Origin: Obrimoposthia wandeli | Taxonomy: Eukaryota | Direction: 5' to 3' | NCBI GenBank assembly: GCA_977020255.1 | Contig: CDROCS010004085.1 | Coordinates: 310,001-374,000, forward strand | Length of the DNA: 64,000 nucleotides | Part shown: piece by piece, positions 1-15,478 of the stretch | How the letters are laid out: every line of letters begins with the position of its first letter | How positions within the stretch are numbered: the first letter of the stretch is position 1 | Notes under the pieces: generated by a model | Database searches by the model: none | The model's input: only the letters and a program-made list of their open reading frames with translations | Told to the model about the DNA's origin: nothing | Made by a program: the position numbers and the translations under genes

Positions 1-1483
1 GGTAGGTTGCATCAATAGCGTTTGTGATGAGATTAACAAGTACTTGTTGAATGGCTGTTTTGTCACCCAAAAAGGAGATATTTTTCTTTGATGACTTTAC
101 GTTAATTGTGATATTTTTTTTAAGTACGTACCAGTCAATCATATTGATTGTAGAGTGTAGTAGGTCATCAAAAATGAATGTTGTTCTATCCGGTGGGGCC
201 AGTCTAAGCATGATGCTATAACGTTTAATGACGTTCTCGCTTCGTTCTAGTTGCACTAGAATTTTACTTAAAATACCGTCATAGAATTTAGCATCACTTT
301 CTTTTTTGGCTATACCACTTTCTGCATATAAGCGCATGGCGCCTAGCGGTTGATTCATTTCATGCGCTAAATTTCCGCCAAGTTTTCCTATTAATGCTCT
401 TTTTTGTGATAGTTGTAGAGTGTGTTGTAGCTTCTGTTTTTCATTTTGTGTGTTGCGAAATTTAATCGTGAGGTAGATGTGGTACGACGGTAGTATCAAG
501 AACAGCATGAAAATTGTCCAAGCAATATATTGATATTCATAAATATAACTGCTGATTGTTTCTGTTAGTGTTCTTGCTTGTGGGTGCATTCCAAGGTCGT
601 AAAAAAGGCTGTCTAGCTCTGTTTGTGATTCGGGTACGCTCCAACCTAAAGATTTTGCTGCTTTTGCTTCAGCGCTTTGTGGTTCGACCGAAAATAGGAC
701 GGAGACAATTTTTTTGGCTAGTTGTCTATCTGCGTGGGCTGACATAGCAAATGACCAATTTGGGTATAAGCGAGAACTCACTTTACATTGGAAGCCAGCA
801 GGGGTTTTATCGTTGATTAGCCTGAAATCATTAATATCGATATTATTCAGCCGAGTATATTCTTCCATAAAGCAAGTGGGAATAACGACCGCGTCCGCCT
901 TGCGGTTCACTAACTGCATAATCGCACTTTCATGTGGATACTCTGTAAACATCACGTTTTTAAAGTATTCACTATCATAGTTATTATCTTTAACTTCACG
1001 TGCATAAGCGAGATATCCACCGAATGCCAAAGGGCTGACGGCAGCTATTTTTTGTTGATAAATATCATCCATCGAGTAGTAAGGGCTATCGCTGCGAACC
1101 CATACGGCAGATGCAATTGATTGTGTTGTTCCTCCGGAGAGGGGGCTAATCAGTGTGGCCAACCATGATAATGTGTTTACTTTTCCCACTCGTATAGATT
1201 CACCTGGGTTTATAAATACAAATGGGACTTCTTTATTAACAATTGCTTGGCGCATTTTTTTTTGTTTTATAGGGTGCAAGGTGAAATTATAATCAGGTAA
1301 TCGAGTGTTGAGTAGGCTTATTATTGCCATCCACCGGTCTTGGCTTTCTTTGAAGCCGTGATCAGAAAAAGCACCAATTTTAATCTCTTGCTGGTTTTCA
1401 GCGGCATAGCCCAGCATTGAGTAAAATTGGCTTACAAGCACTACAATAATGATTATATTTTTCATTGAGCCGCAATCTTTCAT
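1..1483 (-). CDS. TtrS-like sensor histidine kinase (C-terminus runs off the left edge; not in the ORF track)
   Basis: Segments translated by hand. ATG at 1483 overlaps the dmsD stop (TAATG). N-terminus MKDCGSMKNIIIIVVLVSQ..., periplasmic phosphonate-binding-like domain (VFINPG...IAAVSPLAFGGY), H-box LAHEMNQPLGAM and N-box QQVLVNLITNAIDA, all in the same frame. Confidence 0.85.
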   Translation of the reverse strand, partial: MKDCGSMKNIIIIVVLVSQFYSMLGYAAENQQEIKIGAFSDHGFKESQDRWMAIISLLNTRLPDYNFTLHPIKQKKMRQAIVNKEVPFVFINPGESIRVGKVNTLSWLATLISPLSGGTTQSIASAVWVRSDSPYYSMDDIYQQKIAAVSPLAFGGYLAYAREVKDNNYDSEYFKNVMFTEYPHESAIMQLVNRKADAVVIPTCFMEEYTRLNNIDINDFRLINDKTPAGFQCKVSSRLYPNWSFAMSAHADRQLAKKIVSVLFSVEPQSAEAKAAKSLGWSVPESQTELDSLFYDLGMHPQARTLTETISSYIYEYQYIAWTIFMLFLILPSYHIYLTIKFRNTQNEKQKLQHTLQLSQKRALIGKLGGNLAHEMNQPLGAMRLYAESGIAKKESDAKFYDGILSKILVQLERSENVIKRYSIMLRLAPPDRTTFIFDDLLHSTINMIDWYVLKKNITINVKSSKKNISFLGDKTAIQQVLVNLITNAIDATY

Positions 1484-2136
1484 TAAAAGTAAAGTTTTAC
1501 ATTCAATGGCGTATTCACGTCAAGTAGTACTGAAATTTCGTCAATTAAATTTCGGGTAATTAATCCAATTTGGCGATAAAAAACAGTTTTAGCATTCGTG
1601 ACAAGGAGTATTAAGAAACGGTCAAGCCAAGGTAAAAGATGCTGAGAAAGAAAAATCCTTACCGTTCGCTTTGATGTCTCATCATCTGGAGTTAGACCCA
1701 TTCTTTCAAGGAGTAGCGCCAGTATTTCTAAGCAGAAGCCAATATGATCAATGGGTTGAAGCTCTGATGGTTTAAATTTCAGCTGATTTTTTTCTACAAA
1801 GTCTCTCAGATCATAAGTTGAGTCTTGTTGTAATAAGTTTTCATCATGAAGGTAAACGGATCCCCATGGTGGTGCTTTTGGCATTCCTAGCCCTACTATT
1901 AACGCTAAGTGGTCTGCGGCGATTTCTTTTATCTCATTATCAAGCTCATTATCTACTGATAAATTGTTCACTATAGAGGTAAGCTTCTGCCAATCGCTCG
2001 CATACCTTCTTTCCGATACCTCAAAAGTATTTTCATTTAAGCAATTTAATGAGTCTGTTGAGGGGGGGGACAGGTAAAATTTAGCAAGAATATTGAGTAT
2101 AAGAATATCTTCTTGATGATTTTTTTTCATAGTCAT
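1483..2136 (-). CDS. dmsD: TorD/DmsD family redox enzyme maturation chaperone
   Basis: PPWGSVYL and PIDHIG motifs; directly downstream of the molybdoenzyme gene. Confidence 0.9.
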   Translation of the reverse strand: MTMKKNHQEDILILNILAKFYLSPPSTDSLNCLNENTFEVSERRYASDWQKLTSIVNNLSVDNELDNEIKEIAADHLALIVGLGMPKAPPWGSVYLHDENLLQQDSTYDLRDFVEKNQLKFKPSELQPIDHIGFCLEILALLLERMGLTPDDETSKRTVRIFLSQHLLPWLDRFLILLVTNAKTVFYRQIGLITRNLIDEISVLLDVNTPLNVKLYF

Positions 2137-2171
2137 AAGGCTAAGGATTACTCCTTAGCCCTCCTTGAATT

Positions 2172-4604
2172 TTATAGTTTTTTGATGTCGACTAAATTGG
2201 TATTTTGAGGGTTCGCTTTAGCTAGAGCTGTTGCACGGCCTTTCGTTAGGGTATTTATGCAACCTCCCTTATCGATGCCTTGTGCGTTAGGGCTGAACCA
2301 CATGCCTTCAGGTATTACCACGACCCCAGGCATAACACGTGGCGTTACGCGTGCGGGCAGTTCAACAGTTCCTCTGTCGTTATATATGTGCACGATATCT
2401 TGATTGCTGATATTACGTTCTTGTGCATCGACAGGGTTTATAGCAACGGCATCCTCTAAAACCTCACGCAACCAAGGAACATTTTGATAGACGGAGTGAG
2501 CTCGACCTTTTGGTTTACAACCTATAAGTTGGAGTGGATATTTTTTCTTTAATTCGAAGTCTTCAAAACCTTCCCATGTTGCAACATAGCTTGGCAGTGG
2601 TGAAATAACATCGCCTTCTGGCAATACCCACTCTTTTGCGTATTTTGCTAGTGTATGAGAGTAGATTTCAATCTTTCCGGTTGATGTTGGCAAAGGATGT
2701 GCTTTAGGGTCCTTTCGGAAATCTTTGAGTACATAGCGATCTGCGTTAGGATCGAAAGGCATACGAATTGTCTTCGCTTTATCCAACACTTCAAAAGGAG
2801 GGAATTCTGGATGATTCTTACGACTTAGTTCGTAAAGATGCTGTTGCCACTCGTCCCAGCTACGACCTTCTGTGTATTGCTCGCGAACACCGAACTTACC
2901 TGCCAGTTCAGAGAATACATCGTAAGGATGACGGCATTCGTACATAGGGTCGAGTACGTGCTCTGTCTTTGTTAAGTGGGTCGAGAACTTAACAATTCGT
3001 GAATTCTCTAACCATGTAATATCTGGTAATAGTATGTCAGCAAATTTTGCACTCGCTGTCATGAAATTATCCATTACGAAAACGAATTCAACCTTCTCTT
3101 CATCTTGAATGATCTTGGCTGTGCCGTTACAGTCGGAGTGTTGGTTTATTAGCCAGTTACCTTGATAAACAAAGACACATTTCACATCGGTATCAAGTTT
3201 ATCTACACCTTTAATGCCATCTGTTTGAGATGTCATCTCGTGCCCACGTTCAATCGCTTCGGCCCATTTAAAGCAGGGTAGTTTGGCTTTAACTTTATTT
3301 TCCCCAAAAGGCATTTTAGTAATGTCAGTTGATTTAAATAAATAGTCAGAGCCGCCATTATTTGTGCCGGGTAAACCAATTTGGCCTAATAGCATAGGCA
3401 GCATATATATGGAGCGAACGGTTTGTTCGCCGTTTGCTTGGCGTTGAGGGCCCCAACCCTGAGCAATAAAGGGTGCCTTTGCGTTACCAAGTTCGCGCGC
3501 TAATGTGTAAATTGCTTTAGCTTGGATGCCACAAATCTTCTCGGCTCTTTCTGGTGTTTTTGCTGTGCCGTCTGCACCATTACCAAGAATGTGTGCCTTA
3601 TAACCTAAAGATGCATCGAGTGGTAGAATGTTTTTCTCTACGTCACCTTCTTCTTTGTCGTAGCCGTAACAATGCGTTGTAAGAAATTCTTCATCAACGT
3701 AGTTTTCTGTGATCAGTATGTAAGCTAATGCTTCTACTAATGCGGCATCTGTTCCTGGATGGATGGGTATCCATTGATCTTCTCGACCGCACGCCGTGTC
3801 GGTATATTGAGGGTCAATAATGATCGTTCTTGGTGTTTTAACTTGTTTGTTGATTTGATAGTTGTAAGTGTCACTACCACCGCTCATTCGTGTGTTTGCT
3901 GGGTTGTTACCAAAATATAAAATCAAGTCTGAGTTTCTAAATTCAGTTGGGGCGCTGCCCATTGTGAATTTTTTATCCCCGTAGGTAACAGTACTAGCTG
4001 TATCAATTTGATAACTACTGTAGTTACCATGTGCCGGTAAATGCCCACCAATCGAATTCAGGAACCTTGGAACGAAATGGTATGGCGCATTTGGCTTACC
4101 ATAACCGATACGGAAGAAGATCGAGCTGTTTCCGTGTTTATCGATAACGTTTGAAAGACGCTTGTGCACTTCGTTCAGTGCCTCATCCCACGAAATTCGC
4201 TCGAATTTACCTTCACCACGCTTACCAACACGGCGCATTGGGTATTTCAATCGGTCGGGTGCAAATGTACGCTTGTGAATGGCGCGTCCGCGTAAACATG
4301 CGCGAACTTGTTGCTGACCATATTCATCATCACCTTGATCATCGGTTTCTATTCTTTTGATTCGGCCATTTTCGGTTACAACTTTCAGTAAACAGCTAGA
4401 ATGACAGTGAGCCCAGCAGTTATGCCATTTCGTTATTTCTTTGTAATGTGTTTTGATTATGGCTGATGCGATAGCATTTAGAGGTTGCGTTGATAGAAAC
4501 GCGCTTGCTCCAAAGAAGGCACCAAGTTTCATAATTGAGCGACGTTTTGGGTTTTCTAATAGGTTGTCTTTATCTTTACATTTATCATTCATAATAATCA
4601 CCAA
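2172..4604 (-). CDS. dmsA: DMSO reductase family molybdopterin catalytic subunit (DmsA/YnfE-like), Tat-exported; start may be ATG 4592
   Basis: Twin-arginine KRRSIMK; FS0 motif CWAHCHSSC...RACLRGR; DRLKYPMRRVGKRGEGKFERISWDEAL; GNYSS (Ser ligand region); C-terminal RAHS molybdopterin-binding domain. Confidence 0.9.
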   Translation of the reverse strand: MVIIMNDKCKDKDNLLENPKRRSIMKLGAFFGASAFLSTQPLNAIASAIIKTHYKEITKWHNCWAHCHSSCLLKVVTENGRIKRIETDDQGDDEYGQQQVRACLRGRAIHKRTFAPDRLKYPMRRVGKRGEGKFERISWDEALNEVHKRLSNVIDKHGNSSIFFRIGYGKPNAPYHFVPRFLNSIGGHLPAHGNYSSYQIDTASTVTYGDKKFTMGSAPTEFRNSDLILYFGNNPANTRMSGGSDTYNYQINKQVKTPRTIIIDPQYTDTACGREDQWIPIHPGTDAALVEALAYILITENYVDEEFLTTHCYGYDKEEGDVEKNILPLDASLGYKAHILGNGADGTAKTPERAEKICGIQAKAIYTLARELGNAKAPFIAQGWGPQRQANGEQTVRSIYMLPMLLGQIGLPGTNNGGSDYLFKSTDITKMPFGENKVKAKLPCFKWAEAIERGHEMTSQTDGIKGVDKLDTDVKCVFVYQGNWLINQHSDCNGTAKIIQDEEKVEFVFVMDNFMTASAKFADILLPDITWLENSRIVKFSTHLTKTEHVLDPMYECRHPYDVFSELAGKFGVREQYTEGRSWDEWQQHLYELSRKNHPEFPPFEVLDKAKTIRMPFDPNADRYVLKDFRKDPKAHPLPTSTGKIEIYSHTLAKYAKEWVLPEGDVISPLPSYVATWEGFEDFELKKKYPLQLIGCKPKGRAHSVYQNVPWLREVLEDAVAINPVDAQERNISNQDIVHIYNDRGTVELPARVTPRVMPGVVVIPEGMWFSPNAQGIDKGGCINTLTKGRATALAKANPQNTNLVDIKKL

Positions 4605-4612
4605 CTCTTCGC

Positions 4613-5449
4613 TTAAAGATGTTTAATCAAAATAAGATCGTAGAAACAAATTCTTCCTATCAGCTCTGAGGCCAGAAGACAGAAGAAAATACCCAAACCC
4701 ACAATTCTGTTAATTGACGGGAGACGAAGCATAATTGCAGGAACAAATGCAATCACTAGAAGTGCTAGTTTTGCTGTCATTAGAAGTTCTGATGAAGCAG
4801 AAAGAGTGGCACCGATGGTGTTAAGTTCGCTTGTTAGCCATAGTGTGTAGCTAATGCTTGTGATTGTAGAAATGATGAGTGCAGATAAACATCCGAATCG
4901 GATCGCAAGCGATACGGCGTTGTCGTGTTTGTCTTTTTTCACCAAGTTCATTAGAAGAAACGTTAGTCCGCAGCCTGCATTAAGTGCGGTTACGTAAAAG
5001 TTCACTCGTGTCCAATTTGAATCCCACAATGTAACGGTTGGTAGCTTATATACAGAGCTTATTAACCAAATCATTCCGATGCCTGCAATGCTGGCAACGA
5101 TAAATGAAAGCAAGGTGATTGTGTTGTTGGCACGCTTCCATAGAAGCCATGTTGCCAAAACACCTAACCCACCAAAAACTGAAACAGAGAATATTTCTAA
5201 GCTTAATGATGATGAGTGCTCGAGACCGTTAATGATGTTCAGGGCGCGAGTTGGTGTGCCCATATGGCTTAACGCAGCTAAACCGCCAAGGGCGAATATT
5301 GGCCATAAAGCGAGTAATGGTTTTACATAAGAATTTGCGATTTCAGCTGTTTTAGTCGGTTGGCAGAGTATAAATAGTGTAAATAGAATAAAAAATCCCG
5401 CGACGCCTTGCGAGATGACTGTAAAAAAAACAAGCGGTAATTCGTGCAT
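4613..5449 (-). CDS. dmsC: DmsC family membrane anchor subunit
   Basis: MHELPLVFFTVISQ start with GGAGG RBS; SLSHMGTPTRA and SSLSLEI motifs; multiple TM helices; ELIGRICFY end. Confidence 0.9.
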   Translation of the reverse strand: MHELPLVFFTVISQGVAGFFILFTLFILCQPTKTAEIANSYVKPLLALWPIFALGGLAALSHMGTPTRALNIINGLEHSSSLSLEIFSVSVFGGLGVLATWLLWKRANNTITLLSFIVASIAGIGMIWLISSVYKLPTVTLWDSNWTRVNFYVTALNAGCGLTFLLMNLVKKDKHDNAVSLAIRFGCLSALIISTITSISYTLWLTSELNTIGATLSASSELLMTAKLALLVIAFVPAIMLRLPSINRIVGLGIFFCLLASELIGRICFYDLILIKHL

Positions 5450-5450
5450 G

Positions 5451-6083
5451 TTATACCTCCTTAATGTTAATGACTTGTCCAGTTGTATCGCCTGAAGGTT
5501 TTGCATTTTTATTTAATTTGATAACAAGCGAAGGCGAAGTCAGAGAGGCTTTGGGTAACGGTGCGATTTCTGCTATATGTCCGTGTTTTTTGCGTAGGTC
5601 TTCAATTGGGCCGAAATCAATGGCTCTTAATGGGCATGATGAAACACAGATTGGTTTCTTACCTTGTTCGACTAAGTCATAACAACCATCGCATTTCGTC
5701 ATGTGCCCTTTTGCTTCGTCAAATTGAGGGGCACCGTATGGGCATGCCATTTCGCAGTAGCGACAGCCTATACAAACATCTTCATTAACGATAACGAGTC
5801 CGTCTTTTTTACGTTTGTGCATAGCACCGCTTGGGCATGCTTTTGTACAAGCTGGATCAGCACAGTGATTACAGCTGATTGAGGTGTAATAACCAAAAAC
5901 ATTTTGTGTCCATGTTCCATTGCTATCTTTAGCCCATTCGCCACCGACATACTCGTAAACACGACGAAAACTTGACCCTGCAGGTAGGTCGTTTTTATCC
6001 TTGCAAGATACTTGGCAAGTTTTGCACCCTGTGCAGCGACTGGTATCAATAAAGAATCCATATTGAGTATCTGGCACCATCAT
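5451..6083 (-). CDS. dmsB: DMSO reductase iron-sulfur subunit
   Basis: QYGFFIDTSRCTGCKTC, SCNHCADPACTKACP, CIGCRYCEMACPYGAP, KCDGC...CVSSCP: four Cys groups, closely resembling E. coli DmsB. Confidence 0.95.
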   Translation of the reverse strand: MMVPDTQYGFFIDTSRCTGCKTCQVSCKDKNDLPAGSSFRRVYEYVGGEWAKDSNGTWTQNVFGYYTSISCNHCADPACTKACPSGAMHKRKKDGLVIVNEDVCIGCRYCEMACPYGAPQFDEAKGHMTKCDGCYDLVEQGKKPICVSSCPLRAIDFGPIEDLRKKHGHIAEIAPLPKASLTSPSLVIKLNKNAKPSGDTTGQVINIKEV

Positions 6084-6139
6084 AAGTTACCTATTTAATT
6101 ATCAAATAATGGCGATATAAATACCCTATAAAGACAAAC

Positions 6140-6191: not shown

Positions 6192-6442
6192 CATCGTCTC
6201 TCGTGAATTAACATAGTTGGCGTTAAATAAAAGATATGGATAGTAGAAGGCTTTGTTGTTTCTCAACTCTTTTTTGATACCGTTTAAAATCATCTTCGCT
6301 TGATTTTATCTGCTGATGGCGGCCTTTGGCACATCATTTAGCAACCCTTTGATCCCATCTACAGTGGTTGAGTATGGCGAAAACTACCAGCCGCTGACAC
6401 ACCTTCCTCCTATCTGATTCAAAAACATAGCCTGTCACGATT

Positions 6443-7611: not shown

Positions 7612-8778
7612 ATGCGTTCACTTTTTATTCGAATGAGGTTCATTCACTGGTTAGGTGCGATTGCACTTTTGGTTAATGCTACATTTTTCACTGATGTGTT
7701 ATTTTCACAAATCATTCAATATGTTGTTGTTGTTTTTTTGATTATCCATGACATCGATGAGAAATTTTGGGGCGTCGATTCTCTGGAAAATGTCACAAAT
7801 TATATGAAGAATTTTGAAAAAAAAGACCTTTCTGTGCCTTGCGAAATAAACAGTAAGTACAACAAAGAAATGGGTAATGTGCTCAATGTTATTAATACCT
7901 TCAGAGAAAATGTGAAATGTGCGCTGGTAGATATACAACAACAGGCCAATACCTCTGATGAAATATCCGATTTACTTAAGCTCAAAACTCAAAATATTTC
8001 AGTAAGGATTCAGGAACAAGACAATCGAGTGCACTTTATAACAAATCAAGTTGAGACTCTGGATCAGACATCGATAACTCTTCAATCCAAAGCAGAAGAA
8101 ACGCGCTCAAAAGTCGAACAGACCCGAGATGATTTACTTACCTCAAACAGTACAATGGGAATGATGGTAGAGGAGATAGGTACTTATATCCAAAATAATG
8201 ACTCACTCCATGACAAATTTCACCAGCTATCTAAGCAAACACAATCTATTGAAAAAGTAGTATCGGTCATCAATAACCTAGCTGATCAGACGAACCTTTT
8301 GGCTTTAAACGCCGCGATAGAAGCAGCCAGAGCGGGAGAAAATGGAAGAGGTTTTGCTGTGGTGGCAGATGAAGTGAGAAACTTAGCGAAATCAACTCAG
8401 GAAAGTTTGGATGATATCAACCAGATAATAACGGGGATATCTGAAGCGGTTCTTGACGCTGGCGAACAGATGAAAACTCAGTCTGTAGCGATAACATCAT
8501 TGTCTCACTACACAACAACCAGCCAATCAGGGCTCGAAGCGGCCTGTGAAAATATTAATGAAATCCTGCCCCTTATTGGGCAAGACAGTGAAAGTGGTAG
8601 TGTTGATATTCTTTATGTTCACAAGTTGGTTAGAGATATCAGTAAAGAGATTGAAGCATTAAAAACGCTTTCTAGCTCTAATGCTAATGATTGCGCTGAA
8701 CTTGAACAACAAGGGTACTACCTTAGTGAAGTTACAGACAACATCGTAGGGCAATTGGGGTTATTTAAAACAAATTAA
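7612..8778 (+). CDS. Methyl-accepting chemotaxis protein with no sizeable periplasmic domain (ORF open from 7567)
   Basis: Two closely spaced TM helices, HAMP-like segment, hairpin tip [27 protein letters not shown]. Confidence 0.9.
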
Positions 8779-9034
8779 AACTTTTAGACGCGATAATCGT
8801 ATGTATTCCTAAGAATAAAACTTACAGCACGATACAACACTCCCCCCCCAAAAAATACTCAAAGAGGGGGGAGTTTGTGCGAGTTTCAAAAATCATCGAG
8901 TCTGCGATATTTTCACTGACTCTGTGACAGACTCAGTTCCATGTAAGAAACGTTCTTACTGAATAGTAAATGGACAGTCTTAACCCTGTAAAAAATAAAG
9001 TGATATATTGCTTAATAGAAGCTGTTATCTCTAA

Positions 9035-9055
9035 ACGCACGCACGCACGCACGCA
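9035..9055. repeat. (ACGC)5 tetranucleotide simple sequence repeat
   Basis: acgcacgcacgcacgcacgca read directly. Confidence 0.95.
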
Positions 9056-9319
9056 AGCGATCGACTGGAACGATCTGAAATATAAATACAGGTGGTTTCT
9101 AGGCTGGAAATTAAAATAATCTAGAGGGCAGAGCACTTAGCAGGTCGATGAGCTGTTGCTCGTAACATGACTCAAAATGGATTAGCAATGCCACCCCCCT
9201 TCAAGCTAATACACGATTAAATCGATTAGCCTTACAGAGAGGTGTTTATGCTACAAATCAACCCTCAAATGGTTTCCATTCAAAAATTAGATTGTCGTTA
9301 GATTTATTTTTTAATCTGG

Positions 9320-10606
9320 TTAAAAATTGTCCAGCCAGATGTCTTCATTCAAAGATGCTTTATTTTTGCGTTTTTTCTTACCGCTGCCTTCAGGTTTTGC
9401 CATCGGCTTATTTGCAATTAAAAACGCTTCATTCACTTCATCAGCTTCAAAGCCTTCTACTTGCTCACGTTCAAGTCGGAGCTTGTTCTTCTTTTCGATG
9501 ATTTTGAAATGATGATAATCGTCATGATCGATAAGCGATAACGCTAAGCCCACTTCACCCGCACGGCCACTTCGACCAATACGGTGCATGTAGTCTGATG
9601 GGCTTCTTGGTAAGTCGAAATTGATCACTACTGGCAGTTTTTCGATGTCTAAACCACGGGCTGCAATATCAGTAGCAATTAACACTTGGATCTCACCGGC
9701 TTTAAACGCTTCAAGCACGCGAGTACGAGCGCCTTGGCCTTTATCACCATGGAACACTTCTGCGGTAATACCACGTTTAGAGAGTTTGTCTGCTAAGTGC
9801 TCACAGCTGTTTTTCGCATTGACGAAAATAAGCGCTTGTCGCCATTCATTTTGTTTGATCAAGTGCGCCAATAAAGCGGTTTTTTCACCTTTGTTGACGG
9901 TAAAAACACGCTGAACTAAAGTGCTGGCGTCGCTACTTTGCAATTGAATTTCAACAGGTTCGTTAAGCAATTCTTGCGTTAACGTCTGTACTTGTTCAGG
10001 AAAGGTCGCTGAAAATAATAACGTTTGCTTATTATTTGGCAATAAACCCAACAATGCAGTTAGCTCGTCAGTAAATCCTAGGCTTAACATGCGATCGGCT
10101 TCATCAAGTACTAAGGTTTTAACCCTATCGAGCTTAATGGCATTACTTGAAATCAAATCGAGTAATCGACCAGGCGTTGCAACCAAAATATCAGTGCCGC
10201 CACGTAATGCGAGCATTTGAGTATTCGCTGATACACCACCAAAAACAGCAACCGTTTTAATCGCACCGTTAAAATGCACCGCATACGATTTAATGCTGTC
10301 AGCAACCTGCTTAGCCAGTTCACGTGTAGGTACCAAAATCAGTCCAGTAACATAGTTACCTTTACTTAATGGTTTGTCAGCGTGCTGTTGCTCAAAAAGG
10401 TGCTGCAATATAGGCAGTGCAAAAGCAGCCGTTTTACCAGAACCAGTATTTGCCCCTGCAATTAAGTCACGTCCTGCTAATACACTTGGGATCACTTGCG
10501 CTTGAATAGGCGTTGGCTGTTGATATTCCAGCTCAGTTAATCTAGCTAATAGAGGTGAAATAAGGCCAAGTTCTGTAAAGTTGGCTGGCGTTGTGGCAGT
10601 AGTCAT
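9320..10606 (-). CDS. DEAD-box RNA helicase (RhlE-like)
   Basis: Q motif, ANTGSGKT, PTRELA, DEAD, SAT, ARGLD, HRIGRSGR; likely start MTTATTPANF at 10606. Confidence 0.95.
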   Translation of the reverse strand: MTTATTPANFTELGLISPLLARLTELEYQQPTPIQAQVIPSVLAGRDLIAGANTGSGKTAAFALPILQHLFEQQHADKPLSKGNYVTGLILVPTRELAKQVADSIKSYAVHFNGAIKTVAVFGGVSANTQMLALRGGTDILVATPGRLLDLISSNAIKLDRVKTLVLDEADRMLSLGFTDELTALLGLLPNNKQTLLFSATFPEQVQTLTQELLNEPVEIQLQSSDASTLVQRVFTVNKGEKTALLAHLIKQNEWRQALIFVNAKNSCEHLADKLSKRGITAEVFHGDKGQGARTRVLEAFKAGEIQVLIATDIAARGLDIEKLPVVINFDLPRSPSDYMHRIGRSGRAGEVGLALSLIDHDDYHHFKIIEKKNKLRLEREQVEGFEADEVNEAFLIANKPMAKPEGSGKKKRKNKASLNEDIWLDNF

Positions 10607-11027
10607 TAATATAAAGGGCTCAGAGCTAAGATAATAGCGCGCTATTTTAGCGTATTTATGCCCCGTTAAGTTAGTGATATCGATCAAAGCTTGCCGTAAT
10701 GTCATTCCATCACCGTATAGAGCGAGTTTGATTCGACACTAAGTTCCTAAATGGTCACTGTCTTTCATTCTCATTTTTTATGTTACTTAATGCACATAAG
10801 GGGCAAGGTTCTAAACTGAGGGAGAAAACGGGGTGAAACTGAGAATAGTGATAGTTTCATTAATAATAAGGTTATTATCGTGAAAGCACTCTACATAAAA
10901 ATGATGGGCGTGTTTGTATTGATCACTTTACTTTGGTTCAAACCAGTTAACACAAGACTTAACTGCGATCGGTTATGATTTGGATTTATTCCACCGTGAA
11001 TACTTTTCAATGCGTTAGTGTCATCTT

Positions 11028-11075
11028 TATACCCAAGTTACCTCAAGATGCTCGTTTCAGCGAGAATTTGTTGGT
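11028..11075 (+). mobile_element. Possible ERIC/IRU-like MITE left-end remnant
   Basis: TATACCCAAGTTACCTCAAGATGC resembles the TATACCC... terminus of ERIC-type intergenic elements; the 13-bp reverse complement TAACTTGGGTATA occurs at 27535-27547. Confidence 0.35.
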
Positions 11076-11154
11076 ATGGCTCGACAGCTATGATTTATAC
11101 GCCACTTCAAAATAAGCATGAATAGCGACTATTTTTTCATCACAGAGTTGAAGA

Positions 11155-11856
11155 TTAAACATTCATCCAATTTGTGCATAGCACAGGGATTAAACTTGCC
11201 GCTTTCCCTCTTAGGTATTTATATCCGAAGGGGATTTTGCCATTAATATCTAACGAGACAATAATTTTCTCTGCTTTGAAAGGGGCCTTTTTAAGCAGCC
11301 TGGCGGCAGGCTGAACAGTTAAAGAGCTGCCAACGGCTAGTACTTTATCGGCGGATTGTATATGTTTTGTCGCCTCATCTAAGCACAATACTGGTTCGCC
11401 AAACCACACAATATGCGGACGCAATTGGCTATTTAATTCGCAATGTTGACCAATATAAATAGGCTTGTCTTTCCAGTCATAAACAATGGAAGAGTCAATA
11501 CTGCTTTGAGCATGATTGAGCTGTCCGTGTAAGTGTATAACATTGGAACTTCCAGCCCTTTCATGTAAGTCGTCAACGTTCTGAGTAATGATCACTACAT
11601 CGTACACTGACTCTAATTCAACCAAAGCCTTGTGTGCTTGATTAGGAAGTGCTTTTAACGCCTTTTGTTTACGCTGATTGTAAAAGCGAAGTACCAACTC
11701 AGGGTTGCGCTCAAACGCATCCTTACTTGCGATCTCATATACGGGATAGTTGTTCCATAAACCATTACTATCCCTAAAAGTACTCAAACCACTTTCTGCA
11801 CTAATTCCAGCCCCTGTAAAGACAACAATTTTCTTCTTTTTTGTCTCGCTCATCAC
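11155..11856 (-). CDS. Sir2/CobB family NAD-dependent deacylase
   Basis: GAGISAESGLSTFR, ITQNVDDLHERAG, HLHG, LRPHIVWFGE, VGSSLTVQPAA. Confidence 0.93.
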   Translation of the reverse strand: MMSETKKKKIVVFTGAGISAESGLSTFRDSNGLWNNYPVYEIASKDAFERNPELVLRFYNQRKQKALKALPNQAHKALVELESVYDVVIITQNVDDLHERAGSSNVIHLHGQLNHAQSSIDSSIVYDWKDKPIYIGQHCELNSQLRPHIVWFGEPVLCLDEATKHIQSADKVLAVGSSLTVQPAARLLKKAPFKAEKIIVSLDINGKIPFGYKYLRGKAASLIPVLCTNWMNV

Positions 11857-11899
11857 AATTACTCCAGCAACGTTGTCATTGAGTCAATCCTAACGTTCA

Positions 11900-11922
11900 A
11901 ATGCGACATATAACGTCGCATT
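11900..11922. promoter_or_regulatory. Inverted-repeat operator, probable WYL-regulator site
   Basis: AATGCGAC-N7-GTCGCATT in the 99-bp divergent Sir2/WYL intergenic region. Confidence 0.75.
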
Positions 11923-11955
11923 GTGTGTTAACTTTCGATGACTTGATGCAATAAA

Positions 11956-12960
11956 TTGAAATTGTTAGAGAATATTAGAATGGATAGTGGATTAAGAAAG
12001 CTAGCAATACTGGCCAAGTTATCTAAGTACAGAAAAATTTCAGCCTCACAAATTCAGAAGCAGCTTGAAAATGAAGGAACAGAGACTTCGCTAAGAACCA
12101 TACAAAGAGACTTAGTCGAACTTTCCAGCCAGTTTCCAGTATGTGGCGATGAAAGCAAGCCTATCGGGTGGTCTATTGATAAAACGGCTGAACTATCACT
12201 TTCTGATTTTGATCTGACAACCTCTGTTACTTTTGTTCTGGCAGATAAGCATTTGGCTAATTTACTGCCTCCTTCTATGAGAGAAACACTCGAGCCTTAC
12301 TTCCGAACGGCAAAGCAATTTATTCGTTCTGAAAGTAAAAAGCCTGTTAGTCATTGGCCAGAAAAAATTGAGGTTCACACAAAGGGCTTGCCACTGCACC
12401 CGTCTGATATTTCAGAAAAGATCATAGAAGCAATATACAGCTCCGTGTTATCAGAACAGTGCCTTAAAGTCTCTTACTGTTCGTTAACCTCTGGAGAGGA
12501 AAGTCATTTTATTTTCCACCCTTACGGTATCGCAGTTCGCAGCGAGCGTTCTTACTTAATAGGTAGATATGACGAATACGCCGATATAAGGCAGTTGGCT
12601 ATAAGCCGTGTACGTGAAGCTGAAAAGCTGGATAAAGCCGCCGATATTGATCCCGACTTTTCGCTTAAGGATTTCGTAGCACAAGGTGAAATGGGTGTGA
12701 TTCGTGATAATGAAAAATTGAATGTTAAGCTTTGGATCACACCAGTACTTAAAACGATATTAACGGAAACACCGCTGGCAGAAAATCAGAACATTGAGCC
12801 TGAAGGCGATGATTTTATTTTAACGGCATCAGTAGATGATACCGATGAACTAAGGCATTGGATACTTTCAATGTGTAACCACGTCACTGTGTTGTCACCA
12901 CTTAAACTGAAAAATGAGGTCATCGAATACTTATCGAACTCACTTAGTTACTACCAATAA
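11956..12960 (+). CDS. WYL-domain transcriptional regulator (wHTH-WYL-WCX); start may be ATG 11980
   Basis: N-terminal wHTH (SLRTIQRDL), WYL domain (HPYGIAVRSERSYLIG...IRQLAISRV), C-terminal WCX (ELRHWILSM..HVTVLSP..LK). Confidence 0.92.
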   Translation: MKLLENIRMDSGLRKLAILAKLSKYRKISASQIQKQLENEGTETSLRTIQRDLVELSSQFPVCGDESKPIGWSIDKTAELSLSDFDLTTSVTFVLADKHLANLLPPSMRETLEPYFRTAKQFIRSESKKPVSHWPEKIEVHTKGLPLHPSDISEKIIEAIYSSVLSEQCLKVSYCSLTSGEESHFIFHPYGIAVRSERSYLIGRYDEYADIRQLAISRVREAEKLDKAADIDPDFSLKDFVAQGEMGVIRDNEKLNVKLWITPVLKTILTETPLAENQNIEPEGDDFILTASVDDTDELRHWILSMCNHVTVLSPLKLKNEVIEYLSNSLSYYQ

Positions 12961-12970
12961 GGCAAAAATA

Positions 12971-13498
12971 ATGGACCTATTAAATAAAAAACTAAAACAA
13001 ATAGTCGATGATAATCTAGAACACTTTGCCATATTTGCGGCACAAGGATATTCATTTGAAGAATGGTTGAACTTGGAGCTTTGCGTTGCCCTAAATAAAG
13101 ATTTATCGATAAAGAAAAATGCTGTCTGGAATACCCCTAAATACAAACATAACAACGGGGAGCGATTAGATATAGGGTTTACTTACAAAGATGAAAATTA
13201 TGCCATTGAGTTAAAAATAGCTCACCCAAGCACGCTGGAACAATATAAGAACAGTTGCAAGCATGACATAGAAAAACTTTCATCTGCCGAAGAATATCAT
13301 CACCGATTTTTTGTTTTGATTATCGTTTCTACACTATCAGCAGAAGAATTTGCTTCAGATGAAGCTTGGGGCAATTGGGTGAACGATATCTTTAAAGAGG
13401 GCTTGGGTAAACGTGATGCCATTGACCTAGGTGACTCCAAAGGTTCTGTGAATATTTATATGTCTGAAATCACTTATAAGCCCACAATATCGAAATAA
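12971..13498 (+). CDS. Hypothetical protein, predicted PD-(D/E)XK restriction-endonuclease-like fold
   Basis: FEEWLNLEL (helix Glu), RLDIGF (Asp), YAIELK (ExK), then DIEKL helix and FFVLII strand; starts 10 nt after the WYL stop. Confidence 0.6.
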   Translation: MDLLNKKLKQIVDDNLEHFAIFAAQGYSFEEWLNLELCVALNKDLSIKKNAVWNTPKYKHNNGERLDIGFTYKDENYAIELKIAHPSTLEQYKNSCKHDIEKLSSAEEYHHRFFVLIIVSTLSAEEFASDEAWGNWVNDIFKEGLGKRDAIDLGDSKGSVNIYMSEITYKPTISK

Positions 13499-13553
13499 AT
13501 GTTCCCCCGCTCCTAAGCGACTCATTTTGTCCATAAGTGGCTTAGGGTGATCA

Positions 13554-13682
13554 GTACTTATCATTACCATGAATCGCCCCAAGAAACTAAATGGGTGGAC
13601 GATGGAAATGATGGATGCTCTTGCCGAAGTGTTTTCAATAGCAAATACCAACGATGCCGTTAAAGCGATCATTTTATCGTGA
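13554..13682 (+). pseudogene. Enoyl-CoA hydratase/crotonase N-terminal remnant
   Basis: Manual translation VLIITMNRPKKLNGWTMEMMDALAEVFSIANTNDAVKAIILS*, bounded by in-frame stops. Confidence 0.75.
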
Positions 13683-13717
13683 AAAATAACCTGAGGCTCC
13701 CACTATTTTTCTATATC

Positions 13718-15478
13718 TTAATCTTCCGACCAAATTTCTTGAATAGATGGCCAACCCCAAGCTGTAATGGATACCCCTTTTAAAATCCCTTCAAAATGCA
13801 GAGTCTGCTTGTGGTGAAATAGTGGTAATAACCAGTTCTCGCTGATCATTGCAGTTGCAATAGGTTCCAACTCACGTAGGTATTCTGTTAAAGGGCTTTT
13901 ATGTCGGATATTGATTAACTCTTTACCTAACCATTTACTGTTTTCAGGCGTTAGGCTCTGATGTAGAACTGGGTTGGATAACAACCAGCGAAAGGCAGAG
14001 GTAGGGCGATTATCATCTAAGTTTAAGCTCGTCAGGATAAGATCTTCGTTAAGGCGATTTGCGTCAGCCTTCTCGTAAAAATCGTCAAAGGAATAGAGAT
14101 TGATCAGGCATTTAACACCTGCGTGATTCAGTATTTCTTTTATAGCTTCAGAGCAATCCATCAAAGCCTGATGTTTGAACACTGCAATGGTGAGTTTTTC
14201 TGGCAATGGTTGTTGTGTTGTTGGTATTCCAAAGGGTTTTATCCAGGTTGGTAACAAGTTGCGCGCAGGGATTGCCTCTATCTGATTATTTGCATTACTT
14301 AAATACGCCATTATCTCTTTTGTAGCCAGAATCTGACTTAGATACTTACGTTGTAATATTGGAAGATCAGCCTGATGGTTGAATAGCATAAGTAAGCAAC
14401 CGTCTTCGATTCTGGTCTGCTGACCATTATCAGCGTCTATGTTATCTCCGTTGATAGAGAGGTAGTGCGAGCAAACAGAACGTTTTTCTTGTGCAATATC
14501 CGCTTGAAGTGTCGTTGTACAAAATGCATCGTCTTCTTGTGGCGATACCTGCCAGACGGTGACAGTATCGGTGAGCGCACGGCATCCGTAATAGTTGTCG
14601 AATGCCTGTAACTGTAATCGTTTATCTGAGTGCTCTTGAACTTTAAATGCGCCACTGCCCACAATCACTGTTGGGGTAAAGAGCTGTGAAACAGGCTGGA
14701 TTGCGTATCTTGCATCTGCAATTAGCCCTGCAAACCCTGAATCTGGCTGGTTTAGCTGAAATTCTACGCAGTGAGGGTTAATGACAGAAATACTCACCAT
14801 GTGTGCCAGTTCTTTCTGGTATCCCGGCAGATCTTTTAATTGGGTAAATAGTTCGGCTATTACTCTTGCGCTGATTTTACTGCCGTCATGAAACGAAAGC
14901 TGTGGGCGTAAATAGAAGCGCCAGTGATATAGCTCTTCATTATAAGTCCAGTGATGTGCTAACTGAGGAGTGACGATACCATTCTCATTGCACTTGGTCA
15001 GGCTACAATATATTTGGCGTAACAGAAAGCGCTCACTGTTCCTCTGTGGAATATGAGGCAGTAGTTGTGAAAAGGGGCGACGATAGGTTAGCTGAACATG
15101 CAGCTGTCCTTCTCGACGGGTTGCGCCAGAGGTATTTTGTAGTAGCTGTCCAAATAACACTTGGTCATTGTCGATAAGTGCTAAAGCTTTTTCATATTTT
15201 CCTTCAGAGATCATCTTTTTGGCGAGATCCGCCTTCAACTCATCCGGTCTGTATTTAAGATGAAGCACAGAACGCTGGTTACGACCAACTTTCGGAACCC
15301 ACTCTAGCCACCCAATATTTTGCATCTCTTTTAATAGGGTTCGGCTATGTCTGGTACTGGTGAACATGGCTTCCGCCACGTCGTGCAGAGTGATGAGGAT
15401 TTCTGTCTTTACCCCGAGCTTGGCTATGCGTAGGAAGTAAAGGATCAACTTATCTTTAGACTTAGACAAAATGAGCAC
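13718..15478 (-). CDS. SgrR family transcriptional regulator (HTH plus solute-binding family 5 domain)
   Basis: STRHSRTLLKEMQNIGWLEWVPKVGRNQRS N-domain; RNSERFLLRQIYCSL, PQLAHHW, WRFYLRP. Confidence 0.9.
   Translation of the reverse strand: MLILSKSKDKLILYFLRIAKLGVKTEILITLHDVAEAMFTSTRHSRTLLKEMQNIGWLEWVPKVGRNQRSVLHLKYRPDELKADLAKKMISEGKYEKALALIDNDQVLFGQLLQNTSGATRREGQLHVQLTYRRPFSQLLPHIPQRNSERFLLRQIYCSLTKCNENGIVTPQLAHHWTYNEELYHWRFYLRPQLSFHDGSKISARVIAELFTQLKDLPGYQKELAHMVSISVINPHCVEFQLNQPDSGFAGLIADARYAIQPVSQLFTPTVIVGSGAFKVQEHSDKRLQLQAFDNYYGCRALTDTVTVWQVSPQEDDAFCTTTLQADIAQEKRSVCSHYLSINGDNIDADNGQQTRIEDGCLLMLFNHQADLPILQRKYLSQILATKEIMAYLSNANNQIEAIPARNLLPTWIKPFGIPTTQQPLPEKLTIAVFKHQALMDCSEAIKEILNHAGVKCLINLYSFDDFYEKADANRLNEDLILTSLNLDDNRPTSAFRWLLSNPVLHQSLTPENSKWLGKELINIRHKSPLTEYLRELEPIATAMISENWLLPLFHHKQTLHFEGILKGVSITAWGWPSIQEIWSED

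Follow-up and report, generated by a model that had tools for sequence, protein, structure and literature searches.

WYL regulators are known to link nucleic-acid signals with the response to DNA damage and with defence against phages, but for few of them are the targets known. The locus described here raised the question of whether a sirtuin (Sir2), a WYL transcription factor and a small third ORF, which lie side by side, form one regulated unit, and what that unit might do. The locus was analysed within a stretch of 64,000 nucleotides, referred to as the window. Our main reading, to which we give a probability of roughly 0.6, is that these genes are a truncated version of an as yet unnamed Vibrionaceae accessory regulon run by a DriD-type WYL factor. 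The role of this module is probably a conflict or DNA-stress response triggered by ssDNA, judging from characterised relatives of the regulator.

Gene layout in the window and in full-length relatives

The features of the locus are as follows.

11155-11853, minus strand: gene for Sir2, 232 aa when started at ATG 11853, within an ORF open from GTG 11856
11887-11892, minus strand: TAGGAT, a -10-like hexamer 11 nt from the operator half-site, assigned to a proposed Sir2 promoter
11900-11922 (core 11903-11919), unstranded: putative operator AATGCGAC-ATATAAC-GTCGCATT, one palindrome for both divergent promoters
11929-11934, plus strand: TAACTT, a -10-like hexamer with TG before it, 10 nt from the operator half-site and assigned to a proposed WYL-nuclease promoter
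11980-12960, plus strand: gene for a predicted wHTH-WYL-WCX transcription factor, 326 aa when started at ATG 11980, within an ORF open from TTG 11956
12971-13498, plus strand: predicted stand-alone PD-(D/E)XK nuclease gene "nucA", 175 aa, in the same operon as the WYL gene
13514-13534, unstranded: probable decayed second operator TAAGCGAC-TCATTTT-GTCCAT, a putative relic of the promoter of a lost F3-F19-cREC operon
13551-13679, plus strand: N-terminal fragment of a crotonase (enoyl-CoA hydratase) gene, about 43 codons, with the frame translation SVLIITMNRPKKLNGW...AVKAIILS followed by a stop

The three ORFs lie at the positions given in an earlier note on this DNA. Sir2 and WYL are divergent, as stated there, and the spacer between them was revised from 99 bp to 126 bp because the starts were set to ATG 11853 and ATG 11980. 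The latter is the most likely WYL start, since the resulting 326 aa is the length of the 98%-identical protein P0004 and aligns with all homologues; ATG 11853 is the most likely Sir2 start, giving 232 aa as in P0069. The third ORF begins 10 nt past the WYL stop (ATG 12971; stop at 12958-12960), again as reported, with AAGG 8 nt ahead of its ATG. The DEAD helicase and SgrR genes named as flanks were both recovered by Pfam, and the broken crotonase gene at the right flank is the N-terminal fragment listed above, marking a deletion scar and the right edge of the module. A MITE remnant proposed for the left spacer was not borne out, as there was no direct or inverted repeat in that spacer and no second copy in the 64-kb window.

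Full-length relatives of the module are larger and have as many as seven genes, organised into three or four transcription units (F9, Sir2, WYL-nuclease and F3-F19-cREC). The last of these, the second operon, encodes F3 (a 144-aa protein of unknown function), F19 (86 aa) and a cREC domain protein. For annotation of this genome, the three window genes count as a single, truncated unit rather than the self-contained three-gene system that had been suggested. What does stand from that proposal is a functionally linked, co-regulated and patchily distributed accessory unit under a WYL regulator. No PADLOC model of a named system matched, in agreement with the statement that no named system has this layout. 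Each full-length locus has both Sir2 and cREC; in L009 and L024 the two genes adjoin or overlap, and a decayed cREC follows Sir2 in L005 and L007. No RNA ligase, 2H, Nudix, PIN or kinase gene was found in any module locus examined.

No remnants of F3, cREC, F19 or F9 were detected by tblastn anywhere in the window. The sequence suggests that the F3-F19-cREC operon was lost and that a probable decayed operator was left behind, which begins 15 nt past the nuclease stop. Intact operators occupy that position in L001, L002, L006, L008, L009, L010, L016, L024, L025 and L059. The decayed site has two mismatches to the operator pattern. The window has many matches of this quality (65 against 51 expected), and the reading of this one as a relic therefore relies on its position. 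Because F3, F19 and cREC are missing, the window copy may be only partly functional.

The WYL regulator and its operator

The regulator matched the Pfam families WYL (PF13280, E 2.5e-11) and WCX (PF25583, E 7e-12), both above cut-offs, and was also matched by the generic WYL models of PADLOC. For its HTH region, Pfam gave just a weak match to HTH_Tnp_Tc3_2, which at 19 bits fell short of the cut-off of 31.5, and the segment SLRTIQRDL, with invariant R47, Q50 and R51, fits a recognition helix by position and pattern. The R47-x-x-Q50-R51 arrangement is invariant among homologues, and its counterpart in DriD is R37-x-x-E40-R41, a correspondence based on pattern and not on structural alignment. 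When the WYL-family profile was compared with the PDB, PafB/PafC (6e-9) and DriD (2e-6 to 1e-5) were retrieved; nothing else appeared at E up to 0.01, and CapW and BrxR were not among the matches. Among the ssDNA-contacting residues of DriD, Y168, Y192 and R204 are matched by Y174, Y200 and R212. Counterparts of R176, R178 and R207 were absent from the regulator in the sequence comparison, which is an observation against the main reading.

The single inverted repeat described earlier between Sir2 and WYL proved to be a perfect palindrome, with the core GCGAC-N7-GTCGC and 8-nt arms (AATGCGAC/GTCGCATT) that are 100% complementary across a 7-nt spacer. The motif CGAC-N7-GTCG occurred once in the window, where 0.27 occurrences were expected and at least one was seen in 25 of 100 shuffles; alone, this single occurrence is not significant. 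The weight of the operator comes from its conservation across loci. RCGACA-N6-GWCGY, or a GACG half-site variant, was found 70-80 nt upstream of the WYL start in 14/14 close loci examined, and the operator is also conserved in most of the wider WYL clade (~30% identity). In relatives it stands upstream of both WYL and F3, and wherever Sir2 is not directly divergent from WYL it has its own copy upstream (L008 at 5435, L009 at 8183, L024 at 4354). The pattern carries about 19 bits; only a handful of chance matches were expected over all fetched loci and more than 200 were found.

Spacing to the predicted promoters was also conserved. A -10 hexamer was counted if it had A2, T6 and at least 4/6 matches to TATAAT and lay 10-11 nt from the operator half-site, for which the rate at random positions was 5.4%. 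Such hexamers were present at 12/13 F3-facing promoters, about 9/12 Sir2-facing promoters and about two thirds of the WYL-facing ones. Equal 10-11 nt spacing was found for the Sir2-facing operators of L002, L005, L007, L009, L010, L016 and L024, and the WYL-facing hexamers of relatives, at the matching offset, read AATAAT, GATAAT, TATAAT or CATAAT. The window's own WYL-side hexamer, TAACTT, is weak (3/6). This weak -10, together with the missing second operon of the window copy, speaks against the main reading. As read from the sequence, the operator covers the would-be -35 position in most of the module's transcription units. The palindrome marks every transcription unit of the module, the moved Sir2 included, and a -10 usually follows it at 10-11 nt. 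Since a single operator stays with each unit when the genes are rearranged, the extent of the regulon is legible in the DNA sequence.

The consensus operator of DriD (Caulobacter crescentus) is ATACGAC(X)7GTCGTAT, and the site of DdaA (Acinetobacter) is CGACAATATGTGTCG. DriD-activated promoters have no -35; the site takes its place, with constant spacing to the -10, and the targets include the nuclease gene bapE. The module resembles these systems in the predicted wHTH-WYL-WCX domain order of the regulator, the operator core CGAC-N7-GTCG, the R-x-x-(E/Q)-R base-reading positions, the operator over a missing -35 at a fixed distance from the -10 (with the transcription starts here being predicted), apparent autoregulation and a nuclease gene among the targets. 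In its operator, its base-reading residues and the layout of its promoters, the module agrees with DriD and DdaA, which are ssDNA-sensing activators, and not with CapW and BrxR, which are repressors; this suggests that the regulator is DriD-type. The regulator differs from DriD in that its WYL-WCX part matches only weakly, the wHTH did not align by HMM and three ssDNA-contact residues are not kept. The regulon is also local, comprising about 3 to 7 neighbouring accessory genes and one perfect operator core in the window, in contrast to a genome-wide set including recA. Sir2, cREC, F3, F19 and F9 are not known targets of DriD or DdaA.

The sirtuin, the nuclease slot and their distribution

Sir2 matched the Pfam SIR2 family at E 4e-40. 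Against the NCBIfam CobB/deacylase models it scored about 200 bits, all below cut-off (best 200.3 vs 243 and 199.5 vs 320), and its closest solved relatives are Sir2-Af1 (Archaeoglobus), E. coli CobB and human SIRT5 (E 1e-45). It shares with these the Rossmann motifs (GAGIS, TQNVDDLHERAG), the catalytic histidine of HLHG and the acyl-lysine motif YxxR, present as FYNQR. It differs from them in lacking the zinc-ribbon cysteines, which are replaced in the window protein, mostly by serine, and are lost across the whole family including stand-alone members, in falling below every CobB cut-off and in standing under a WYL operator. Identity was 43% to E. coli CobB and 56-63% to homologues in other orders, which stand alone without a WYL gene. 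No PADLOC family matched at E up to 0.01, and a relative gave just a chance-level 14.5-bit match. ThsA, DSR1/DSR2, SIR2-HerA and SPARSA also have a Sir2 fold in an accessory cluster resembling a conflict system, but the window protein matches no PADLOC Sir2 model and consists of one 232-aa domain that carries motifs of the deacylase type, without their typical sensor or partner domains. By sequence it is a zinc-less CobB-like class III sirtuin and not a ThsA/DSR NADase, in keeping with the caveat already attached to the locus. The identity to CobB and stand-alone homologues, the retained YxxR and the lack of a match to a defence Sir2 model suggest that it may be an ordinary deacylase brought under the WYL regulator, a point against the main reading.

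An orthologous Sir2 (63-81% identity) was found within 2.5 kb of the WYL gene in 12/14 loci with enough flank. Sir2 was relocated into the downstream operon in L009 and L024. In V. metschnikovii the original Sir2 is a 48-aa remnant, and a different, zinc-containing Sir2 adjoins it. L004 carries the WYL-nuclease-F3 part without Sir2. The module-linked Sir2 genes form a single clade (support 85/80), which may reflect taxonomy since all are from Vibrionaceae.

The third ORF had been called a PD-(D/E)XK nuclease, and structure prediction strengthened this call. Its AlphaFold2 model, built from a 38-sequence alignment, had a pLDDT of 94.8. Foldseek against AFDB clusters returned "restriction endonuclease", NERD, NOV_C and PD-(D/E)XK entries (E 9e-8 to 1e-4, TM 0.5-0.79); against the PDB alone the match was weak (E 0.013). 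VIA-align ranked R.SwaI (Z 8.1) and Card1 (7.2) highest, then CinB, OkrAI, BamHI, EcoRV and Hjc, and PD-(D/E)XK enzymes made up most top rows. The predicted catalytic motif is E30/W32/E36 ... D67 ... E80-L-K82, in which E30 shows no variation among the 38 sequences and W32, E36, D67 and E80 show little or none; K82 is retained in most and replaced in part of the distant members. No Pfam family matched, and PADLOC gave just a 14.7-bit match to its CARF_PDDEXK model. These data support a predicted PD-(D/E)XK nuclease fold for the 175-aa product.

The nuclease family is rare, with 3 word-search matches and 37 cluster representatives among 1.84 billion proteins, and a small nuclease always lies downstream of this WYL gene (about 16 distinct Vibrionaceae loci). 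The occupants of this position are two PD-(D/E)XK families and one GIY-YIG-like family, which are unrelated or barely related. On the WYL tree, nuclease type changed 6 times in 14 rows, against a shuffled mean of 6.6. Window and L015 DNA are 69% identical over Sir2 and WYL, a similarity that does not extend beyond WYL. The position after WYL is a slot for nuclease cassettes that are freely exchanged.

The module is restricted to Vibrionaceae, in about a dozen species, seven of which were among the 185,579 species representatives scanned. In V. vulnificus a relaxase gene (PF03432) stands some 1.5 kb away from it, and a gene for an Xre/MbcA-type antitoxin domain is close by. Some chromosomal neighbourhoods are common across genera, with an ABC-F gene in L004, L007, L010 and L015; an M32 peptidase gene neighbourhood is common to L006 and L008. 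Most copies stand among housekeeping genes and not in recognisable defence islands, and none was found on PLSDB plasmids or IMG/VR contigs, observations that count against the main reading.

Proposed function and alternative explanations

By analogy with DriD, DdaA, PafBC and CapW, the WYL domain would bind ssDNA arising from DNA damage, phage replication or incoming DNA. The regulator dimer would then recruit RNA polymerase; release from DNA seems less likely. In the window, one operator would drive two back-to-back promoters, with Sir2 leftward and WYL plus the nuclease rightward, so that expression of a small stand-alone DNA nuclease and a CobB-like NAD-dependent Sir2 would rise. In full-length relatives that signal would also drive the F3-F19-cREC operon, and the Sir2 product would probably be handed to cREC, because cREC is predicted to process ADP-ribose or cyclic-phosphate products. 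The exchanged nuclease cassette, the patchy distribution and the one copy close to a relaxase gene suggest that the module serves in conflicts, which could mean defence against phages or mobile elements or a damage-triggered self-cleavage like that by DriD-controlled BapE; core repair would be less likely. We infer the defence role, and we regard the Sir2-nuclease-WYL module as a promising candidate for a new system of stress response or phage defence.

A more specific and tentative possibility, to which we give well under even odds, is that the full-length relatives are a new multi-operon Vibrionaceae system for immunity or programmed death. An ssDNA-sensing DriD-type activator would control an exchangeable DNase, a zinc-less sirtuin and cREC; sirtuin and cREC would make or process an ADP-ribose-derived product, and the window would be a minimal three-gene remnant able to persist. 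If true, this would be the first cellular, regulated case of sirtuin-cREC chemistry, so far predicted just for phages. The module joins previously unlinked things, namely a DriD-type activator in an SOS-bearing gammaproteobacterium, a slot for unrelated small nucleases and a CobB-like sirtuin with an uncharacterised cREC, and offers a small testable system for cREC function. It also bears on whether a deacylase-type sirtuin can serve in a conflict system and on the reach of DriD's mode of activation from a site over a missing -35.

The model of the earlier note was repression in the style of CapW and BrxR, in which the WYL dimer blocks RNA polymerase, an ssDNA or phage ligand frees the promoters and infection is aborted by the nuclease, whether or not Sir2 consumes NAD as well. 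CapW and BrxR, from CBASS, BREX and other systems, are repressors, and ssDNA releases CapW from DNA. The module is like theirs in having a wHTH-WYL-WCX factor whose gene heads a set of accessory conflict genes or diverges from it, a palindromic operator within the common promoter region, possibly the ssDNA signal of CapW and, across the wider WYL clade, interchangeable cargo; that clade adjoins typical defence cargo (PLD-helicase, a 921-aa PD-(D/E)XK protein, a dynamin-like GTPase and other Sir2 proteins). With its centre near -30, the operator covers the core promoter, and several near-consensus -10 hexamers preceded by TG could fire without a -35 and would need repressing; both observations also suit a plain repressor and go against the main reading. 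A stand-alone nuclease in the regulator's own operon would likewise need tight control. However, the operator sequence, base-reading residues and promoter layout are those of activators, the PDB search returned PafBC and DriD alone, the Sir2 is not of a known NADase-effector type and the cargo fits no PADLOC system model. We consider repression doubtful as a whole; WYL regulation of the block stands, and activation is at least as likely as the derepression first proposed. Another possible explanation, which we judge unlikely, is an accessory to DNA-damage tolerance or repair with no conflict role, where an SOS-independent response like that of DriD or DdaA would switch on a structure-specific nuclease together with a deacylase that adjusts the activity of repair or metabolic proteins. 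The characterised factors with this operator all run a DNA-damage response, the Sir2 resembles a true protein deacylase and many copies lie between housekeeping genes, some in neighbourhoods common across genera. Swaps between unrelated nuclease folds would be unusual for repair genes on this time scale, however, and the restriction to about a dozen species, the copy beside a relaxase gene and the lack of a known repair role for cREC, F3, F19 and F9 also speak against it.

NAD- or ADP-ribose-linked processing of RNA ends, with Sir2 acting like KptA on RNA 2'-phosphates, cREC resolving cyclic ADP-ribose phosphate and WYL sensing cyclic-ended RNA fragments, would account for Sir2 and cREC occurring together in every full-length locus. 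Both nuclease folds are metal-dependent and do not produce cyclic phosphate ends, which argues against it. Conserved phage sirtuin-cREC neighbourhoods and this chemistry were predicted by Iyer, Burroughs, Anantharaman and Aravind (PMC9503650, section 3.7.3), who also named WYL as a possible sensor of cyclic-ended RNA. The full-length relatives share with those systems a CobB-like sirtuin linked to a cREC protein. In contrast, the loci here are cellular and without RNA ligase, 2H, Nudix, PIN or kinase partners, a WYL factor resembling ssDNA sensors and DNA-type nucleases are added, and the window copy has no cREC; the Sir2 of phage KVP40 (38% identical) also has no cREC within 4 kb on either side. 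We regard RNA-end processing as quite improbable. Last, Sir2 could be a housekeeping cobB that merely adjoins an unrelated WYL-nuclease pair, as its high identity to CobB and stand-alone homologues and its absence from L004 would allow. The chance of this seems very slight, since the relocated Sir2 keeps its own operator copy (L008, L009, L024) and V. metschnikovii has a different Sir2 beside the remnant of the original. Sir2 also remains in the cluster through rearrangements, and it remains where the flanking genes change between genera.

Gene order in the window and in related loci

The Sir2-WYL-nuclease module is real, conserved and unnamed, and is a new take on the theme of WYL-controlled stress or defence systems. 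The window holds a three-gene form that is truncated compared to its relatives.

Features of the module and its flanks in the window (the three ORFs and the two flanking genes from the ORF listing and the raw sequence)
9320-10705: DEAD-box helicase gene, left flank
11155-11856, minus strand: Sir2 gene
11956, plus strand: opening of the WYL ORF
12971, plus strand: ATG of the third ORF (nuclease), 10 nt past the WYL stop
13514-13534: putative decayed operator, TAAGCGAC-TCATTTT-GTCCAT, right half-site damaged, 15 nt past the nuclease stop
13551-13679, plus strand: N-terminal fragment of a crotonase (enoyl-CoA hydratase) gene, 43 codons, cut at both ends, directly after the decayed operator and followed by SgrR
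13718-15478: SgrR-type regulator gene, right flank

Pfam matched SIR2 (4e-40), WYL (2.5e-11) and WCX (7e-12) in these ORFs and no family in the third. The earlier note described Sir2 and WYL genes diverging across 99 bp with one inverted repeat, and an ORF beginning 10 nt past the WYL stop. The ORF listing and the sequence agree with this arrangement but not with the spacer length. Homologues place the likely starts at ATG 11853 for Sir2 (232 aa) and ATG 11980 for WYL (326 aa), so the spacer is 126 bp. It contains a strong inverted repeat, AATGCGAC-N7-GTCGCATT, at 11900-11922, and a second, weaker one with 14-nt arms (79%).

Related loci were gathered from three nuclease relatives, seven Vibrionaceae genomes identified by a WYL profile, four more Vibrionaceae Sir2 relatives and metagenome contigs, and family HMMs were run over all of them. 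A gene of about 175 aa starts 2-10 nt after every close WYL gene (at least 47% identity). Full-length loci continue with F3 (144 aa, no known family), often F19 (86 aa), and a protein with a cREC domain (PF20274, E 1e-20 to 1e-25). An orthologous Sir2 gene is divergent from WYL in L002, L005, L006, L007, L010, L015 and L016/L017, and also in L008 and L110, where F9, a small protein that often adjoins Sir2, lies between them. It sits within the downstream operon in L009 and L024 and is missing in L004 only. In L001 (V. metschnikovii), the usual Sir2 is a 48-aa N-terminal remnant (6225-6368) adjoined by a different, zinc-containing Sir2 of 286 aa (5250-6110). The L023 locus pairs a nuclease of the window's family with a Sir2 similar to this zinc-containing one.

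The three genes that the earlier note had grouped do recur together in relatives, and the fuller units are larger than three genes. The short form of Sir2, WYL and nuclease only was found in the window, in the near-identical L003 and, independently, in Photobacterium swingsii (L015). F3, F9 and F19 matched no Pfam, PADLOC or PHROG family, and an Atlas lead to BTB-like proteins for F3 (0.67) was within the chance range and was dropped. The cREC proteins form two paralogue groups, encoded after F3/F19 and immediately after Sir2, respectively. Several of the copies are truncated (L009:8021-8218 and 9044-9289; L024:5129-5407; L005:4871-5092; L007:4928-5134), and the post-Sir2 copy of L024 overlaps the Sir2 stop. 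In Vibrio porteresiae (L110), an IS element with an rve transposase (1130-2241) splits the nuclease and operator from the F3-cREC genes.

No trace of F3, F19, cREC or F9 was detected by tblastn anywhere in the window. The site at 13514-13534 lies where relatives have intact F3 operators; since operator matches with two mismatches are frequent in the window (65 vs 51 expected), its reading as a decayed operator rests on this position. The simplest reading of the right edge is that one deletion took F3-F19-cREC together with most of the crotonase gene. P. swingsii has an intact ECH gene about 5.7 kb from its module.

On the left, the possible MITE remnant of the earlier note found no support. 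The flank has no repeats, no second copy within the window and no MITE-like repeat structure, only an indel polymorphism of about 85 bp in the helicase-Sir2 spacer (window ~10850-10860 vs L003:212-293), with the extra bases in L003, a metagenome contig 96-99% identical to the window. Foreign origin could not be argued from composition, as the GC contrast between module (0.35-0.42) and flanks (0.40-0.46) is not telling. Rfam gave nothing within 10500-13900.

The sirtuin and the exchangeable nuclease slot

The closest solved relatives of the window Sir2 are Sir2-Af1, E. coli CobB (43% identity) and SIRT5, and no PADLOC Sir2 effector model was matched, in keeping with an earlier caution that the sirtuin looks CobB-type and not ThsA/DSR. 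It scored about 200 bits against the NCBIfam CobB/deacylase models, under every cut-off. It retains the NAD-binding motifs, the HLHG histidine and the YxxR motif (FYNQR) known from class III deacylases, and its zinc-ribbon cysteines are replaced. Zinc-less sirtuins of this kind make up a large family among marine bacteria, with stand-alone members (56-63% identity) in Litoribacillus, Pseudoalteromonas, Cellvibrio and Thiodiazotropha that have no WYL gene nearby.

The nuclease family of the window, nucA, is a rare one: three relatives turned up among 5.8 billion proteins in a word-based search, and 37 among 1.84 billion cluster representatives in an exhaustive profile search. In the 38-sequence alignment, E30 and W32 are invariant, E36, D67 and E80 are nearly so, and K82 follows E80 in most members, which is the helix-Glu ... 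D ... E-x-K signature. An AlphaFold2 model built from this alignment had a pLDDT of 94.8. Foldseek matches of the model to solved structures were weak (E 0.013; top rows including Cas4, SfsA, SwaI, MGME1 and HincII), and those to AFDB fold clusters had E 9e-8 to 3e-4 and TM 0.5-0.79, under the names restriction endonuclease, NERD, NOV C-terminal, YqaJ and PD-(D/E)XK. VIA-align returned R.SwaI (Z 8.1) and Card1 (7.2), with CinB/CidB, Cdn1, OkrAI, CdiA-CT, BamHI, EcoRV and Hjc in further rows. Because of the conserved motif, the model and the fold matches, the third gene is predicted to encode a PD-(D/E)XK nuclease, and the motif read by hand in the earlier note was right.

The position after WYL is an exchangeable slot that holds three nuclease families.

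Nuclease families in the slot
nucA: window, L001, L002, L003, L023
nucB (PDF...IEIK, PD-(D/E)XK-like): L004, L006, L007, L024, L025, L059, L110
nucC (GIY-YIG-like): L005, L008, L009, L010, L015, L016

The nucB family gave weak matches to Pfam PDDEXK_9 and PADLOC CARF_PDDEXK. It was kept separate from nucA because hhalign aligned only the catalytic core, at a probability of 6.6% (E 0.006). The conserved nucC pattern (YQIYG ... LLYIG ... R ... EH ... E ... N) and its Atlas neighbours (0.94-0.97, with structural matches to GIY-YIG clusters) are a lead to a GIY-YIG-like fold, not proof of it; a profile search of the PDB gave nothing for nucC.

In a maximum-likelihood tree built from 14 WYL proteins, nuclease type requires six changes (minimum 2; shuffled mean 6.6), and the sister WYL genes of L009 and L024 are followed by nucC and nucB, respectively. 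From Sir2 through WYL, the DNA of the window and L015 shares 69% identity, a similarity that is lost at the WYL stop. The Sir2 and WYL trees also conflict, and therefore the parts of the module recombine. Three loci have an additional, divergent nuclease gene that belongs to the family of their first one: L005 (8662-9369, minus strand; the two copies about 57% identical), L004 (7606-8196, minus) and L007 (7606-8169, minus). The entire nuclease-operator-F3-cREC block of L005 is inverted, and it and WYL-nuclease run towards each other. The duplicates and this inversion suggest that cassettes are exchanged or inverted blockwise. Remote nucA relatives outside Vibrionaceae (L111:304-1363, L113:4001-4785) are followed by a 66-aa ORF and have no WYL gene; the only one with readable flanks (n=1) adjoins a flagellin gene. 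These may be a separate two-gene cassette.

Operator, promoters and type of WYL factor

The regulon of this module is unusually readable from DNA. The palindrome RCGACA-N6-GWCGY lies 70-80 nt upstream of the WYL start in all close loci. When all fetched loci were scanned, each full-length one also had it between its nuclease and F3 genes. It precedes Sir2 in precisely the loci in which Sir2 and WYL do not directly diverge (L008 5435, L009 8183, L024 4354). With a pattern of about 19 bits, few chance matches are expected in the scanned DNA; over 200 were counted, most of them at WYL genes, including those of a metagenomic WYL clade at about 30% identity.

A -10-like hexamer (A2, T6 and at least 4/6 matches to TATAAT) was sought 10-11 nt past the half-site on the gene-facing side. 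It was present in 12/13 promoters facing F3, about 9/12 facing Sir2 and about two thirds of those facing WYL, compared to 5.4% of random positions.

Candidate -10 elements in the window
11 nt left of the palindrome, towards Sir2: TAGGAT
10 nt right of the palindrome, towards WYL: TG-T-TAACTT

The window would thus have two putative back-to-back promoters, with one common site over the would-be -35 position. These findings answer the refuting condition set in the earlier note: the sirtuin is a regulon member and not a mere neighbour.

The F3 leader carries a conserved hairpin, ACTCTCTCC-N9-GGAGAGAGT, with the Shine-Dalgarno sequence in its 3' arm (L001:8511-8580, L002:2460-2528, L006:7555-7630, L008:7518-7590 and eight other loci). 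In the alignment, 95% of cells are paired, and 3/9 pairs show two-sided changes (L006: CTCCCTCTG/CAGAGGGAG). This hairpin, absent from the window, may be a translational control element.

The operator resembles the sites of ssDNA-sensing WYL activators. DriD reads the consensus ATACGAC(X)7GTCGTAT through Arg37, Glu40 and Arg41 (PMC10853764), and Acinetobacter DdaA binds CGACAATATGTGTCG (PMC13010146). A 2026 cryo-EM study reported that promoters activated by DriD have no -35, that the DriD site overlaps the -35 position and keeps a constant spacing to the -10, and that the nuclease gene bapE is among the targets (PMC13004042). The module promoters have the same site-over-missing-(-35) layout and fixed -10 distance. 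Recognition-helix residues R47-x-x-Q50-R51 are invariant in the module WYL family, and among PDB entries at E ≤0.01 its profile matched only PafB/PafC (6e-9) and DriD (2e-6 to 1e-5). On these grounds we favour an ssDNA-stimulated activator over a CapW-like repressor, at about 60:40. Doubt about the activator reading comes from several -10 hexamers that are strong and TG-preceded, and from three of the ssDNA-contacting arginines of DriD, which have no counterparts in the module WYL.

Distribution and candidate role

Linkage of the genes, the common operator, the promoter layout and the exchange of cassettes are shown; inferred are the ssDNA signal, whether the factor activates or represses, and the role of the module in the cell. 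A conflict function is a candidate for this role. Unrelated nuclease folds are exchanged in it, and its spread is patchy, with seven species matched among 185,579 representatives. Against this, the Sir2 is deacylase-like, most copies have housekeeping neighbours, and the plasmid and viral collections are without the module: in PLSDB the only matches were WYL relatives (25-32% identity), with F3 missing, and in IMG/VR they were wHTH fragments. No named system was matched either, as the PADLOC matches of the module proteins were all to generic WYL models or at chance level. Full-text literature searches (WYL with Sir2 and cREC, GIY-YIG or Vibrio) found no paper describing the cluster.

The only PHROGs matches were to Sir2, WYL and a cREC family that has no name. 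A sirtuin-cREC pairing has been predicted for phages (PMC9503650); the module has the same pairing, but the RNA-repair partners of that prediction are all absent from it. No cREC lies in the 4 kb to each side of the Sir2 gene of phage KVP40, and one 'phage' Sir2 match was discarded as the E. coli chromosomal cobB inside a record.

The surroundings of the V. vulnificus copy (L016) also favour a conflict role, as a relaxase gene (PF03432) lies about 1.5 kb away with an AAA_33 kinase-like gene between (1-3016), and an Xre/MbcA/ParS-type antitoxin domain gene lies on the other side (8705-8902). This copy is probably a mobilisable island. The cargo of the wider WYL clade is likewise defence-like. 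The metagenome relatives L026-L101 (about 30% identity) keep RCGACA-N6-GWCGY upstream of their own genes, and they form a large operator-sharing WYL subfamily with exchangeable cargo, including a PLD-helicase, a 921-aa PD-(D/E)XK protein, a dynamin-like GTPase, an amidohydrolase and other Sir2 types.
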